The position numbers and the translations under genes were made by a program. Shown in pieces: positions 47,401-53,400 of a stretch of 64,000 nt of DNA (position 1 is the stretch's first letter; every line of letters begins with the position of its first letter). Under the pieces are notes generated by a model. It searched no databases and was not told where the DNA came from. It saw nothing but the letters and a program-made list of their open reading frames with translations. The DNA is from Tubulanus polymorphus (lineage: Eukaryota > Animalia > Nemertea), in the NCBI RefSeq assembly GCF_964204645.1, contig NC_134032.1, positions 15,612,275 through 15,676,274 on the forward strand, given 5' to 3'.

Positions 47401-50400
47401 ATACAATAAGTAAATATAGAATTTGAATTAAAATCGTGTTCTTTAAATAAGCATGTTTTAACCGATGAATCTCTCAAAAGACGATATCGCCCAAATGTGT
47501 TTTGGCGAACTATTCCACAGACAACAGGCAGAGACGGAAAATGATCTATGAAAATTGATCACGACTCTTAACAGTTTTAATCAGATAAGATAAATTGAAG
47601 AAATTGAATTTGAAGATGGAACTTACCCATCGCTTGTTCGTTAGCAGGAATCCTCTGTAAATAGCAATAATATAAAACTCAATGCAACAGAAAATTACTA
47701 CAGCGGGCGCTAACTACAATAGTTCACAGTAGCACTGAACGCGGTCTGAGAAATAAATGGTGCATTCTAAGATGACCTCTTTATTTGCCCTTTGTAATCA
47801 CACAGTATTTATTACCAGACAAGAATTATTTTTTTTTATTACTTGGAGTACAGATCCACATCCCGGAATTTTGCAAAAATCATCAATTCTTTTAGTCTTG
47901 CTTCCTGTTTTCATCACAATTTTCCCAATTAAAAAAAAAAAATTTTTCATGTCCGCCTTGATTTTCAATCCAGTTACTTGTAAAAGTTATGTACATCTCG
48001 ATTTTCAATCTCTTGATTCGCAAAAATTTTTTTTAAATTTTCCTTCATCATTTAAATCATATTCACTCGTTTTTTAAAATTTTTTTTTCTGCAGTCTTTC
48101 CGAGATTTTATGTGGAATATACTCAAGACAATACAAGAAATATTCATACTTTTTTCCTATTCCCTTCAATTTTAAAACGCCTAACAGATAATTTTTTCCC
48201 CTCGTCCTCCAAAAATTTTTCTTGAAAAAATCCGTACTCCAAGTACTTAAAAAAAAGGCCTTAGAATCAGGGATCGCACGGATAGACGATATTGACAGCA
48301 CAGCGGTATTGATCGTGAACAGTGTAACATGTATTATCAGTTACTGATACTGGCTTAGACCCAACAAACACAGAAAAACATCAAATTAGAATTATAACTT
48401 ACCGGAGTATCCGGTAATGCCTCATCTTCCTCTGTAAGATTCTAGAAAAATTAAAATGATTTCATATAAATGAAGAATATACAAATTCACAGAACACAAT
48501 TTCATGCTACACATTACACGCTGCATTATTAGTACGAGAAACTGAAACCAATATTGATCAGTTTAAAGGCTGGTTTATGTCGATAAGCGATGCGACGCCT
48601 ACCGACGCAACTGAGGGAAACCAACAGCCCACGACTTTTGTGACTGCGCTCAGATTCATAGCAACTGAGGCCGACTAGCTGGATATGACATCCGTCCAGT
48701 TGCTTCCCTGCTCATGTCGGTTATCAACTGCACCGGCTCAGATGGCCAAATGATGGACATTTTGAGAATAGACCTAAATTATTACGAACAAATATATTTT
48801 GAGAAATTATGGATAGACTTAAATTGAATATGAGAAGAAATCCGGGAGTTGTTGTCGGAATGCACACTAGCGACACCTGGTGAGTCCTCATTGAAACGCT
48901 TTCTCACTTAGAATAATAAATAAATTCAATCCGTTCCAGTTCAGATTTTCAATAAATGACAGTGTTGGTTATTATGTCATCATTAGCGCCATCTACACGG
49001 GTATCAGAAGAACTACGCAAGGTGAAAATTGCTTCAAATTTACACTTTTCAATCATTTATATTTCAGTAATCCATCACTCATTACAAAATTTCTCAAAAA
49101 TGATTATTATGTAACACATTATTATCTGTTGTTAAAAACAAAAGCTATTTTAGGCAACACTTGATCGTTGAGAGATGAAAAATAACTAGACCTAATTATA
49201 ACTAGACCTAATAACTAGACTATTAATTTTGAGAATAGACCTGAATTATTACAAACAAATATATTTCTTGTCGCTAGTCGGCTTATGTCGAACCGATAGA
49301 GCAGCAACTGGCGGCCTCTCGTAGGCCACTAGTTGCCACTAATCGGCGATTAACCCTGTTGCGTCAGTAGGCGTCAGTTGCTTGTCGAATCTATTATCAG
49401 TTAGATAATTCACTGAACCTGGCTTAGACCCATTGTACTTAAAAACATCAAACTAGAATTATTATAACTTACTGGTGACAACCTTTCAAAGGGCGTTGGT
49501 GGCCGCGCGGCCAAATTCTGGGCCGGATCATTGGTGTTCTAGAAAAAATGAAATTATTTCATATAAATGAAAAATATACAAATTTACAGAACACAATTTC
49601 ATGCTACAATCAGGCCACAGAGTGAGTTATATTGAATATTCATATCAAATCTATCTAAACTTGTCAGTGAGATGAACTGTAAGCATTCATCTACTGTAAA
49701 GGCCCCCCACGGACACTAGGGGAATTGAGACGCTGAAAATTCATGTCTTAAGATTTGTCTGTTACTACAACTTAGTTGTTTGATTTAACGAGGGAATTCC
49801 ATAAACTAAAAAAAAAGGAATAATCAGCTTGAACCTGATTAATCCACAATTTTTGTATGATTTATTGCAACGACAGACCTTGGCTCAAAGAGTTAATATG
49901 AAAAATAGTACTTTATTACATCTATTGCAAATCTATTTCACTTTTCTACTGATTCAAAGCTCGTATTCATTGTGTATCGGTCTCGATATGCGACCAATGG
50001 CTTAGACCCAACAAACACAGAAAAACATCAAACTAGAATTATAACTTACTGGTGTGTCCGACTCTTCATCGTCAGATGAATTCTAGAAAAAATAAAATGA
50101 TTTCATATAAATGAAGAATATACAAATTTACAGAACATAATTTTAAGCTACTGAGGCCGAGTAGCTGGATATGAGATCCGTCCAGTTGCTTCCCTGCTTA
50201 TGTCGGTTATCAACTGCACCGGCTCAGATGGCCAAATGATGGACATTTTGAGAATAGACCTAAATTATTACAAACAAATATATTTCTTGTCGCTAGTCGG
50301 CTTATGTCGAACCGATAGAGCAGCAACTGGCGGCCTCTCGTAGGCCACTAGTTGCCACTAATCAGCGATTAACCCTGTTGCGTCAGTAGGCGTCAGTTGC

Positions 50401-53400
50401 TTGTCGAATCTATTATCAGTTAGATAATTCACTGAACCTGGCTTAGACCCACTGTACTTAAAAACATCAAACTAGAATTATTATAACTTACTGGTGACAA
50501 CCTTTCAAAGGGCGTTGGTGGCCGCGCGGCCAAATTCTGGGCCGGATCATTGGTGTTCTAGAAAAAATGAAATTATTTCATATAAATGAAAAATATACAA
50601 ATTTACAGAACACAATTTCATGCTACAATCAGGCCACAGAGTGAGTTATATTGAATATTCATATCAAATCTATCTAAACTTGTCAGTGAGATGAACTGTA
50701 AGCATTCATCTACTGTAAAGGCCCCCCACGGACACTAGGGGAATTGAGACGCTGAAAATTCATGTCTTAAGATTTGTCTGTTACCACAACTTAGTTGTTT
50801 GATTTTACGAGGGAATTCCATAAACTAAAAAAAAAAGGAATAATCAGCTTGAACCTGATTAATCCACAATTTTTGTATGATTTATTGCAACGACAGACCT
50901 TGGCTCAAAGAGTTAATATGAAAAATAGTACTTTATTACATTAATTGCAAATCAATTTCACTTTTCTACTGATTCAAAGCTCGTATTCATTGTATATTGG
51001 TCTCGATATGCGACCAATATTGAAGCACGGTCATTCGATATATTTTATCAAATAAATACATTAATGTATCGTTAAAATATTAACAGTAACTGAACAAAAT
51101 AGCCATAAGTCGGCCATCTTGAATCCAAATGGACCAAGTTACGTTCAGTACCAGTTCTATCGTTCCCTTATCGCCCAATTCTCAGAGCGCCTCCTGACCT
51201 GCTTTCAGACGCTCGTCAGGATTTCACCTCGCCAGGCGCGGATAGTAGCCACGTGATACGACTCGGGAGGGCAAAATAGATCAGACCAGTGGGTGGCTCC
51301 CATTGGCTCCGAGAATTCATTTTGAGTAGTTATGAAAGGAAGACCCGGAACTGGAATTATTCTGACCAGACGAGGCTTGATGCGACTGTTGAGTCAGGTG
51401 CTCGTTAGTAGCCGCTTGAGAAAGCACCGATGTCGGCACTGTCTGAGACCGGGCCGAACCTTGATCCACCGGAGCCGGACCAGATTTAAGTAGAGTCCGT
51501 ATCCAGACAGCTGTGACAATGATCTACAGCTCATAGTGTCGCATAATAGGACGATACTCTTATTGGAGGATCCGCCGTCCTGATTTCATGCTCCGTTCCG
51601 GAAGGGAAATGAAAACTTTCCGAGGCAAGTTTCATCCCATAATTGCGCATCCGACCGAGTCCCCTCTCTTGACACTGCGGGCGAGATCAGAGTCCGGGGC
51701 CAGATAAGCTTCCATGTTTTACATTAACTCATCTATCATTGTTCTTAAAGACATGTCTAACACTGGCTCTGTTAGAACTGAACGTGACGGTGAAACTAAA
51801 CTGTGAACCATTTTATGAGCTAAGGTGGCCCCCTTTTTGTGGAGCAATCCGAAGCTGATTGCCACAGAAACTTCGCCAGAAGTTGCAACAACTTCTGGGA
51901 ATCGTGATTCCTCATTAAAATGAGACCTCCGGAATCCAGAACTTCACTATCTGACTTCTCAATTATGGGCTTGAGAAACTGGACTAAGGAAGATACACCT
52001 ATTGGAGGTTCGTTCGAACTGAAATATTTTCCTGATTAAGCTCATTTCAGTTCTATAACCAATCTAACAACTTAAGACCAGTCTAAACTCATTTTGGTTC
52101 TATAACCAATCTAACAACTTAAGACCAGTCTAAGCTCATTTTAGTTCTATAACCAATCTAACAACTAAAGACCAGTCTAAGCTCATTTTGGTTCTATAAC
52201 CAATCTAACAACTTAAGACCAGTCTAAGCTCATTTTAGTTCTATAACCAATCTAACAACTTAAGACCAGTCTAAGCTCATTTTAGTTCTATAACCAATCT
52301 AACAACTTAAGACCAGTCTAAGCTCATTTTGGTTCTAAAACCAATCTAACAACTTAAGATCAGTCTAAGCTCATTTTGGTTAAATAACCAATCTAACAAC
52401 TTTAGACCAGTCTAAACTCATTTTAGTTCTATAACCAATCTAACAACTAAAGACCAGTCTAAGCTCATTTTAGTTCTATAACCAATCTAACAACTTAAGA
52501 CCAGTCTAAGCTCATTTTGGTTCTAAAACCAATCTAACAACTTAAGATCAGTCTAAGCTCATTTTGGTTAAATAACCAATCTAACAACTTTAGACCAGTC
52601 TAAACTCATTTTAGTTCTATAACCAATCTAACAACTAAAGACCAGTCTAAGCTCATTTTGGTTCTATAACCAATCTAACAACTTAAGACCAGTCTAAGCT
52701 CATTTTAGTTCTATAACCAATCTAACAACTTAAGACCAGTCTAAGCTCATTTTAGTTCTATAACCAATCTAACAACTTAAGACCAGTCTAAGCTCATTTT
52801 AGTTCTATAACCAATCTAACAACTTAAGACCAGTCTAAGCTCATTTTGGTTCTATAACCAATCTAACAACTTAAGACCAGTCTAAGCTCATTTTAGTTCT
52901 ATAACCAATCTAACAACTTAAGACCAGTCTAAGCTCATTTTAGTTCTATAACCAATCTAACAACTTAAGACCAGTCTAAGCTCATTTTAGTTCTATAACC
53001 AATCTAACAACTTAAGACCTAGTGTCTAAACTCATTCTAGTTCTATAACCAATCTAACAACTTAAGACCAGTCTAAGCTCATTTTAGTTCTATAACCAAT
53101 CTAACAACTAAAGACCAGTCTAAGCTCATTTTAGTTCTATAACCAATTTAACAATCTAAGACCTAGTGTCTGAACTCATTCTAGTTCTATAACCAATCTA
53201 ACAACTTAAGACCAGTCTAAGCTCATTTTAAATTTGCATTCGAAACTACTTAAATTTAGATAGTTTGTGACATGATACTAACGATTGTAACGAGCAGTCA
53301 AAAGATTTTGCCGAAAGAAACGACCATAAGTCGACCATCTAAATTCCAATTGGGCAAATATTTTGGGCTGCAGCATTCGCAGTTTGAGTCCATGAACAAA

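Follow-up and report, generated by a model that had tools for sequence, protein, structure and literature searches.

MHC exon 2 is marked by patchwork alleles, micro-gene conversion and short-tract exchange, with old exon lineages lying among homogenised introns. In VSG, vlsE, pilE and chicken Ig conversion, constant arms surround a variable core and exchange is templated. Between the primate L/M (red/green) opsin paralogues, exons and synonymous sites are more diverged than introns under gene conversion, forming a sharp exon peak (PMC3213168; PMC3924837). The schistosome MEGs contain runs of tiny symmetric exons, are fast-evolving and lineage-restricted, and occupy TE-rich loci; every one has a signal peptide, and dN/dS is high (PMC4350168). 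In the portion of the titin PEVK account considered here, short, repetitive, proline-rich exons were amplified by duplication and vary in length, the PEVK-C exons are homogeneous, and exon-over-intron divergence is not reported (PMC6469411). A literature search for exactly the pattern described below, in micro-exons, found nothing relevant.

The window analysed, a stretch of 64,000 nucleotides from the nemertean Tubulanus polymorphus, contains predicted micro-exons whose pattern is most likely due, as in the primate red/green opsin genes, to gene conversion that removes intron differences, old exon variants surviving or being swapped in. As in the L/M opsins, exon divergence between paralogues is significantly above that of introns, and synonymous sites also exceed introns. 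Unlike the opsins, internal modules of 30–80 nt are repeated within and between ~35 or more genes, and many separate exon classes peak, all-or-none per copy. Homogenised introns beside old exon lineages, with exchange in short tracts, as inferred here, would be shared with MHC exon 2; however, the family is not a receptor, its dN/dS is below 1 and an intracellular, low-complexity product is predicted. Like the MEGs, it has very small symmetric exons in series, evolves rapidly, is lineage-restricted and sits in TE-rich loci; it differs in its omega of ~0.35, in a basic MPKA-type exon close to the presumed start and in having two large exons at the 3' end. Short, proline-rich, repetitive exons, amplified via duplication and varying in length, recall titin PEVK, whereas the micro-exons here are heterogeneous and diverge more than introns, unlike the PEVK-C exons as far as the portion of that account considered here describes them.

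Predicted micro-exons of the window and their gene family

The features of the window are as follows, by position in the window.

58049-58078, 55537-55566 and 53551-53580, minus strand: 30-nt phase-0 exons, all three identical, lying upstream within the gene model of the micro-exons below
49226..51018, no strand assigned: recent tandem duplication behind both 66-nt exons, 774 bp at 98.6%, period ~1.02 kb
50558..50626, minus strand: acceptor flank common to the cassettes, exon 66a; near-identity with the C8:15.069 Mb copy runs on to ~51018
50492..50557, minus strand: 66-nt phase-0 micro-exon, copy a (NTND...LSP), AG/GTAAGT bounds, stop-free
50439..50491, minus strand: donor flank of exon 66a, 66-type, ~86% identical to the 33/39-type
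50083..50151, minus strand: acceptor flank common to the cassettes, exon 33
50050..50082, minus strand: 33-nt phase-0 micro-exon, 11 residues
49998..50049, minus strand: donor flank of exon 33; at its outer end, 49998, a rearrangement has joined it to an older intron segment of the family
49473..49538, minus strand: 66-nt phase-0 micro-exon, copy b, identical to copy a
48442..48545, minus strand: acceptor flank of exon 39, proximal 70 nt 93% like its neighbours
48403..48441, minus strand: 39-nt phase-0 micro-exon, 13 residues
48321..48402, minus strand: donor flank of exon 39; 51/52 positions match the donor flank of exon 33, beyond which the older form continues
47627..47654, minus strand: 28-nt exon of the same gene, phase 0-to-1
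27209..27441, minus strand: penultimate exon, 233 nt, phase 1-to-0, with ~35–40 full-length paralogues
26034..26426, minus strand: terminal exon of 130 aa and a stop codon, basic and NLS-like, with 34 full-length copies at 89–100%

The first-pass annotation had recognised four exons of 39, 66, 33 and 66 nt with shared flanks. All four segments do lie on the minus strand in phase 0, bounded by AG and GTAAGT and free of stops, but they represent only three independent cassettes, because the two 66-mers are identical within the tandem duplicate. They fit a stop-free 10-exon minus-strand model that remains in frame through to a stop codon. Seven of its ten in-window exons are tiny and symmetric, comprising about one third of the in-window coding bases; the 5' part of the gene lies beyond the window. 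The three 30-nt exons sit in a macrosatellite of 2–2.5 kb. Judged from sequence, the segments are predicted to be translated, frame-neutral micro-exons.

Decayed duplicated DNA or an assembly artefact, in which the segments are not exons at all, would accord with the repeat mosaic of the region and with broken sister copies. Some variant exons do occur in broken-looking copies, including a 68-nt frameshifted version and lost donors. This reading is nevertheless very improbable given the canonical splice sites, the in-frame model to the stop and an omega of 0.35, and sequencing error is not codon-aware. Furthermore, 92 of 112 candidate micro-exons are divisible by three in length, and among these 92, frame 0 is open in 85, as against 32 and 51 for the other frames.

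The gene family comprises ~35 close copies, on C3, C6 and C8, together with many broken and inverted ones, and was wholly missed by ORF and homology searches. Homologue searches were run exon by exon. The two large exons have no Pfam match; the penultimate exon has no homologue among 1.8 billion representatives, and the terminal exon none in a 5.8-billion set or the ESM Atlas. The family thus appears to be an orphan, its product probably a Pro/Ser-rich, disordered nuclear protein; the MPKA-type exons near the presumed start are basic and have no hydrophobic stretch. Ser/Thr-Pro, acidic and basic modules seem to vary in number and sequence among copies, and perhaps also through exon skipping, which would illustrate a route to modular diversity in disordered proteins.

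Exon cores diverge far more than adjoining introns

Between the 39- and 33-nt cassettes the flanks differ at 6/121 bases (5/69 on the acceptor side and 1/52 on the donor side), while the exons differ at 12/33 bases (5 synonymous, 7 replacement) in addition to a two-codon gap (Fisher p=1e-5). The original observation of nearly identical flanks around divergent exons is confirmed and holds family-wide. Flank identities of 64/69 and 51/52 compare with a best of only 39/69 and 32/52 in shuffled windows. The donor side of ~50 nt described as common to all four exons is so for the 39/33 pair; the 66-mers are only ~86% alike there, with two indels. Likewise, shared lengths of ~50 and ~70 nt describe 39 versus 33 well (~52/69 nt) but are not fixed, reaching ~87/75 nt between the 66-mer and its C3 relative, ~235 nt between the 39-mer and a C8 relative, and ~900 nt between the 66-mer and C8:15.069 Mb. 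A constant-repeat/variable-insert array had been proposed, and variable cores with alike flanks are present; its regularity was overstated, since the repeats differ in length from pair to pair and the sharp donor edge at 49998 marks a rearrangement.

The reversal of normal exon-over-intron conservation proves stronger than first claimed, with more marked cases outside the window. Comparison of 66a with its sister copy there, L034:9033-9095, gives 0/299 differences upstream and 8/245 downstream, against 16/57 and 2 indels within the exon (p=2e-12). In a six-unit tandem array of 2.7-kb units (C8:15.156-15.172 Mb), micro-exons carry 0.198 extra alleles per site and introns 0.016. A GC-rich block of 566 nt in the same array has 0.030 and the large exons 0.05, so that micro-exon variation is 12x that of introns, 6.5x that of the GC-rich control and 4x that of large exons. 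Family-wide, divergence between duplicated copies is 5 to 20 times greater in micro-exons than in the surrounding introns, and exon cores are far more divergent than adjoining introns at all depths tested. Such ~45-nt peaks, with zero differences for the adjoining 250 bp, are unusually sharp natural examples of divergence under probable gene conversion and are found again across dozens of copies and many classes of exon. Because they are sharp and replicated, a few long-read haplotypes would allow direct tests of tract length, of the heterology barrier and of mutation as opposed to selection.

That sequence close to splice sites is constrained around micro-exons is well established. It is conceivable, though rather improbable, that the cassettes are merely old and that flanks of 50–70 nt were kept by strong purifying selection as micro-exon splice signals. 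The acceptor flank of the 28-nt exon is in keeping with this, aligning at 70–82% to 38 paralogous sites where the exon does not, nearly every match ending at the exon boundary. However, introns of 545 bp to 2.5 kb, including a dispersed repeat, are only 1.4–2% diverged around exons at 10–28%, which is left unexplained, and the 39/33 pair would require ~95% constraint against a pS of 0.7. Splice constraint on the flanks probably contributes but is insufficient.

Introner-like spread of one intron into phase-0 Pro|Asn sites had also been suggested. Intron ends are alike, and of 58 distinct micro-exons 30 begin with Asn and 30 end with Pro. Against this, the repeated unit is acceptor, exon and donor, centred on the exon, and the outermost splice sites, the first acceptor and the last donor, are paired with unrelated ones. 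The introns between cassettes measure 409, 511 and 1031 nt; the first two of these have unrelated cores, and intron cores are otherwise rearranged. The proposed genome-wide query with the flank found matches only in the clusters of one gene family, on C8 and C3, which leaves the spread of an introner with a negligible probability. As a general mechanism, RNA folding into a hairpin around the exon was rejected: a short CTAG-centred inverted repeat pairs in some models only, with inconsistent z-scores (-3.0 to +0.15).

Codon bias and patchiness of the exon excess

pS exceeds pN in every comparison (0.38–0.71 versus 0.14–0.27 in window-type pairs), with a pooled omega of 0.35 (p=8e-5). The comparison of exon dS with intron divergence, recommended at the outset, places synonymous sites above introns. 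Positive selection on amino acids was accordingly rejected as the main driver, with omega at ~0.35. CpG deamination and GC content were rejected as causes too, because the excess holds at non-CpG sites (0.186 vs 0.021) and the GC-rich control block is low. In one duplicated exon, amid introns 1.4% diverged, each of the 5/45 differences falls at a third position, while its neighbour has 0/45; in the tandem array, 16/32 differences are at third positions. Many exon pairs have zero differences at 1–4% intron divergence, and the data reject a constant-multiplier model (X2=207, df 14), for hand-picked pairs with intron rates taken as exact. A within-exon mosaic test is suggestive, not significant (p=0.06). 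The exon excess is thus synonymous-biased, non-CpG and arranged in all-or-none patches in single copies.

Exon-targeted diversification, raised in the first-pass annotation, fails in the form of uniform hypermutation, since divergence is all-or-none and synonymous-biased. A related but unlikely account invokes exon-focused mutagenesis, for example break/repair hotspots at GC/CpG-rich micro-exons, with purifying selection removing most replacements. Exon transversions outnumber transitions (27 vs 20), several synonymous sites show three alleles among near-identical copies, and no donors were found by near-identical search of one assembly, all of which favour it. The zero-difference pairs speak against a uniform rate, and a single burst is not codon-aware, yet the patches are third-position-biased (5/5 and 16/32, above).

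Synonymous excess extends to a conserved large exon (pN 0.012, pS 0.26, adjoining flank 4%), values hard to explain by divergent selection on amino acids. Selection might instead act on exon nucleotides, copies gaining by mRNA unlikeness and so diverging quickly at synonymous sites, whether this means escape from recombination or from small-RNA silencing by broken copies. The large exon and the many broken and inverted copies suit such selection, but within the same units variation is 4 times higher in micro-exons than in large exons, and many pairs are identical, making it distinctly improbable.

Probable old exon lineages in young intron contexts

Synonymous bias, mostly non-CpG change and all-or-none patches fit old translated exon lineages and do not suit an introner, decay of CpG sites or positive selection alone. 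The preferred explanation, given a probability of roughly 60%, is that old exon lineages came to lie in young intron contexts via gene conversion, with purifying selection on the peptide; of the three alternatives initially offered, gene conversion with retained exon diversity fits best. Cassettes of acceptor, exon and donor would have multiplied through tandem and segmental duplication, old exon variants being filtered by selection on the peptide and brought into young introns by gene conversion and unequal crossing-over between copies. By one route, conversion would overwrite introns up to the exon edge, the diverged core escaping through selection and/or a heterology block. By the other, short tracts primed in similar flanks would transfer an old variant of the exon to a new copy. 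Intron overwriting and exon pasting are indistinguishable in these data. Distal intron parts may turn over by repeat insertion and rearrangement, which would account for flank islands of only 50–70 nt.

Counting against the preferred explanation, no donor or second copy was found in near-identical DNA of one assembly for the three variant exons tested; no second copy of the 39-nt exon was seen in the assembly by near-identical search. The variant exons in broken-looking copies, the synonymous excess of the conserved large exon and the no more than suggestive mosaic test weigh in the same direction. A more active process is also imaginable, in which similar intron ends are homology arms for exon-focused exchange, DNA- or RNA-templated and possibly somatic. 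Copies and alleles of an invertebrate family of intracellular proteins would then trade micro-exon cores at rates well beyond background, which seems doubtful. Cassette antigenic variation offers a parallel in its constant arms and variable core, templated exchange being one possible route here. In contrast to such systems, no silent donor library was found by near-identical search of one assembly, nor was a fixed repeat length or dedicated machinery seen. With no fixed flank length and no donor for the three tested exons, a programmed cassette system is not supported.

Flank swaps and patches in common between copies are present in the family, and the same exon is found with different acceptor flanks. 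A near-identical relative of the 33-nt exon, at L034:9607-9639, has a different acceptor flank, and the distal acceptor flank of exon 39 (within 48442..48545) resembles older cassettes at C8:15.81 Mb.

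Micro-exons within conserved intron flanks

The window (G000:C8:15612275-15676274) belongs to a 268-Mb eukaryotic assembly. The four segments described in its first-pass annotation are all present at the stated positions, on the minus strand, with AG/GTAAGT borders and frame 0 free of stops. The independent cassettes (acceptor flank, micro-exon and donor flank) number three rather than four, however, because both 66-nt exons have one and the same sequence and lie within one 98.6% tandem duplicate. Comparing the 39-nt exon with the 33-nt one gives 5/69 and 1/52 mismatches in the flanks (shuffled windows match them at no more than 39/69 and 32/52 bases), and 12/33 mismatches plus a two-codon gap in the exons themselves.

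Exon divergence exceeding flank divergence, first noted in the window, holds throughout the multi-copy family related to its gene. Between the 66-mer and its sister in another family locus (L034:9033-9095), 0/299 bases differ upstream and 8/245 downstream, whereas the exon itself shows 16/57 differences and two indels (p=2e-12). In an array of six 2.7-kb tandem units (C8 15.156-15.172 Mb), the number of extra alleles per site is 0.198 for micro-exons, 0.016 for introns, 0.030 for a GC-rich block and 0.05 for large exons. For the 28-nt exon, the acceptor flank is alignable at 38 paralogous sites, where matches nearly all stop at the last intron base.

In all comparisons pS exceeds pN, and pooled omega is 0.35 (p=8e-5), which favours translation of the segments and speaks against amino-acid positive selection as the main driver. 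CpG decay is rejected: only 3/32 micro-exon alleles in the array are CpG transitions, and at non-CpG sites variation is still nine-fold faster in micro-exons. Within one duplicate whose introns differ by 1.4%, one exon has 5/45 changed bases, all of them third positions, and the next exon 0/45. A constant exon/intron multiplier is rejected across 15 hand-chosen pairs (X2=207, df 14; intron rates treated as exact). Since divergence is all-or-none and codon-aware, the sequences point to old exon lineages within young surroundings. A conserved large exon also reaches pS 0.26 with 4% divergence in its flank, so that splice-proximal constraint or nucleotide-level selection may contribute as well.

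The repeated unit and its exchange

Introner-like spread, another early proposal, is rejected because the evidence points to the cassette as the unit: introns between window cassettes measure 409, 511 and 1031 nt, the first two having unrelated cores, the outermost acceptor and donor are joined to partners of other types, and genome-wide flank matches all fall inside clusters of one gene family on C8 and C3, none in unrelated hosts. A dispersed repeat (570 candidates) lies in one of the intron cores. A constant-repeat/variable-insert array is too regular a picture, as shared length varies by pair (~120 nt total up to ~900 nt) and the abrupt end of donor similarity at 49998 marks a rearrangement, where an older intron segment of the family is joined on. 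A near-identical copy of the 33-nt exon (L034:9607-9639) has a different acceptor flank, showing that flanks have been exchanged by recombination.

Gene conversion plus unequal exchange between family copies probably produce this pattern, the exon core either evading homogenisation or arriving by short tract. For gene conversion with retained exon diversity, as originally suggested, the exon excess and flank exchange speak in favour, but near-identical matching in one assembly found no donors for three variant exons. The within-exon mosaic test is suggestive only (p=0.06), and some of the variant exons belong to copies that look broken. With no donors and no fixed repeat length, the evidence falls short of a programmed cassette system.

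In L/M opsins, homogenised introns contrast with higher divergence in exons and at synonymous sites, with a peak at exon 5 (PMC3213168; PMC3924837). The family likewise has exon divergence between copies above intron divergence, and synonymous sites more diverged than introns, both defining features of that system. By analogy it appears to work like opsin-type concerted evolution. Its architecture also resembles schistosome MEGs (PMC4350168), which, however, have high dN/dS, against an omega of 0.35 here; no sign of a MEG-like signal peptide was seen in the family's MPKA-type exons, which are basic and lack a hydrophobic stretch.

Host gene, family and neighbouring elements

Read exon by exon, the gene model is open and phase-consistent across ten predicted exons.

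Predicted exons (phase reading) and family clusters (assembly G000)
Starting 58078, 55566 and 53580, minus strand: three 30-nt exons
After these, minus strand: exons of 66, 33, 66 and 39 nt, in that order
47654-47627, minus strand: 28-nt phase 0-to-1 exon
27441-27209, minus strand: 233-nt exon
26426-26034, minus strand: terminal exon
C3 0.4-1.3 Mb; C6 0.65-1.75 Mb; C8 15.0-16.3 Mb; C9 0.95-1.6 Mb; C11 0.4-3.0 Mb: family clusters

Close paralogues of the two large exons number ~35, grouped near contig ends on C3, C6 and C8; distant ones occur on C9, C11 and at C8 13.9 Mb. Nearly all family copies lie no more than ~3 Mb from a contig end, and tandem units of 30-45 kb hold many of them. Searched as single exons, the two large exons gave no homologue outside the Tubulanus polymorphus genome: neither had one in Pfam, nor did the penultimate exon in 1.8 billion representatives or the terminal exon in the 5.8-billion set and the ESM Atlas. 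In the fetched loci, 92/112 candidate micro-exons have a length divisible by three, with frame 0 open in 85 of the 92 (other frames, 32 and 51). Their peptides are Pro-, Ser-, Thr- and Arg-rich, and the predicted product might be nuclear and disordered.

Several copies carry further peculiarities. L034 and neighbours (G000:C8:15046-15068 kb) carry a frameshifted, 68-nt form of the 66-nt exon seven times in tandem, adjoining a dead acceptor (AC for AG); this array looks pseudogenic. At L037-L039 (G000:C8:15156-15172 kb), two 2.7-kb units have lost the MPKA exon donor through a 4-bp deletion, and two others have a common terminal-exon patch similar to C3 copies. The gene at L041 (G000:C8:15810-15818 kb) has many diverse Asn-starting micro-exons with related flanks, one encoding a SUMO-consensus-like IKQE motif. 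A 66-nt MPKA-type exon at 1155-1220 (minus strand) probably belongs close to the beginning of the next gene of the family, and similar exons form tandem repeats on C3 (L048:4318-4731).

A retroelement at 59897-63985 (minus strand), with long open overlapping ORFs and RT and RNase H (Pfam), has a layout that suggests DIRS type and probably sits in a host-gene intron; relics related to it occur at 43020-43390 and 51600-52050. The macrosatellite at 51758-59320 comprises 2-2.5 kb units, 98.6-100% identical, containing a 30-nt in-frame exon (identical among units), a 47-bp satellite and a 32-bp hairpin array. A 388-bp duplicate (46846-47233 and 48798-49183, 96%), with a plus-strand donor-like site preceded by an open stretch, is possibly a piece of another gene. 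Broken ORFs resembling LINE endonuclease/reverse transcriptase occupy 36957-39229 (plus strand), in the gene model's 20-kb intron.
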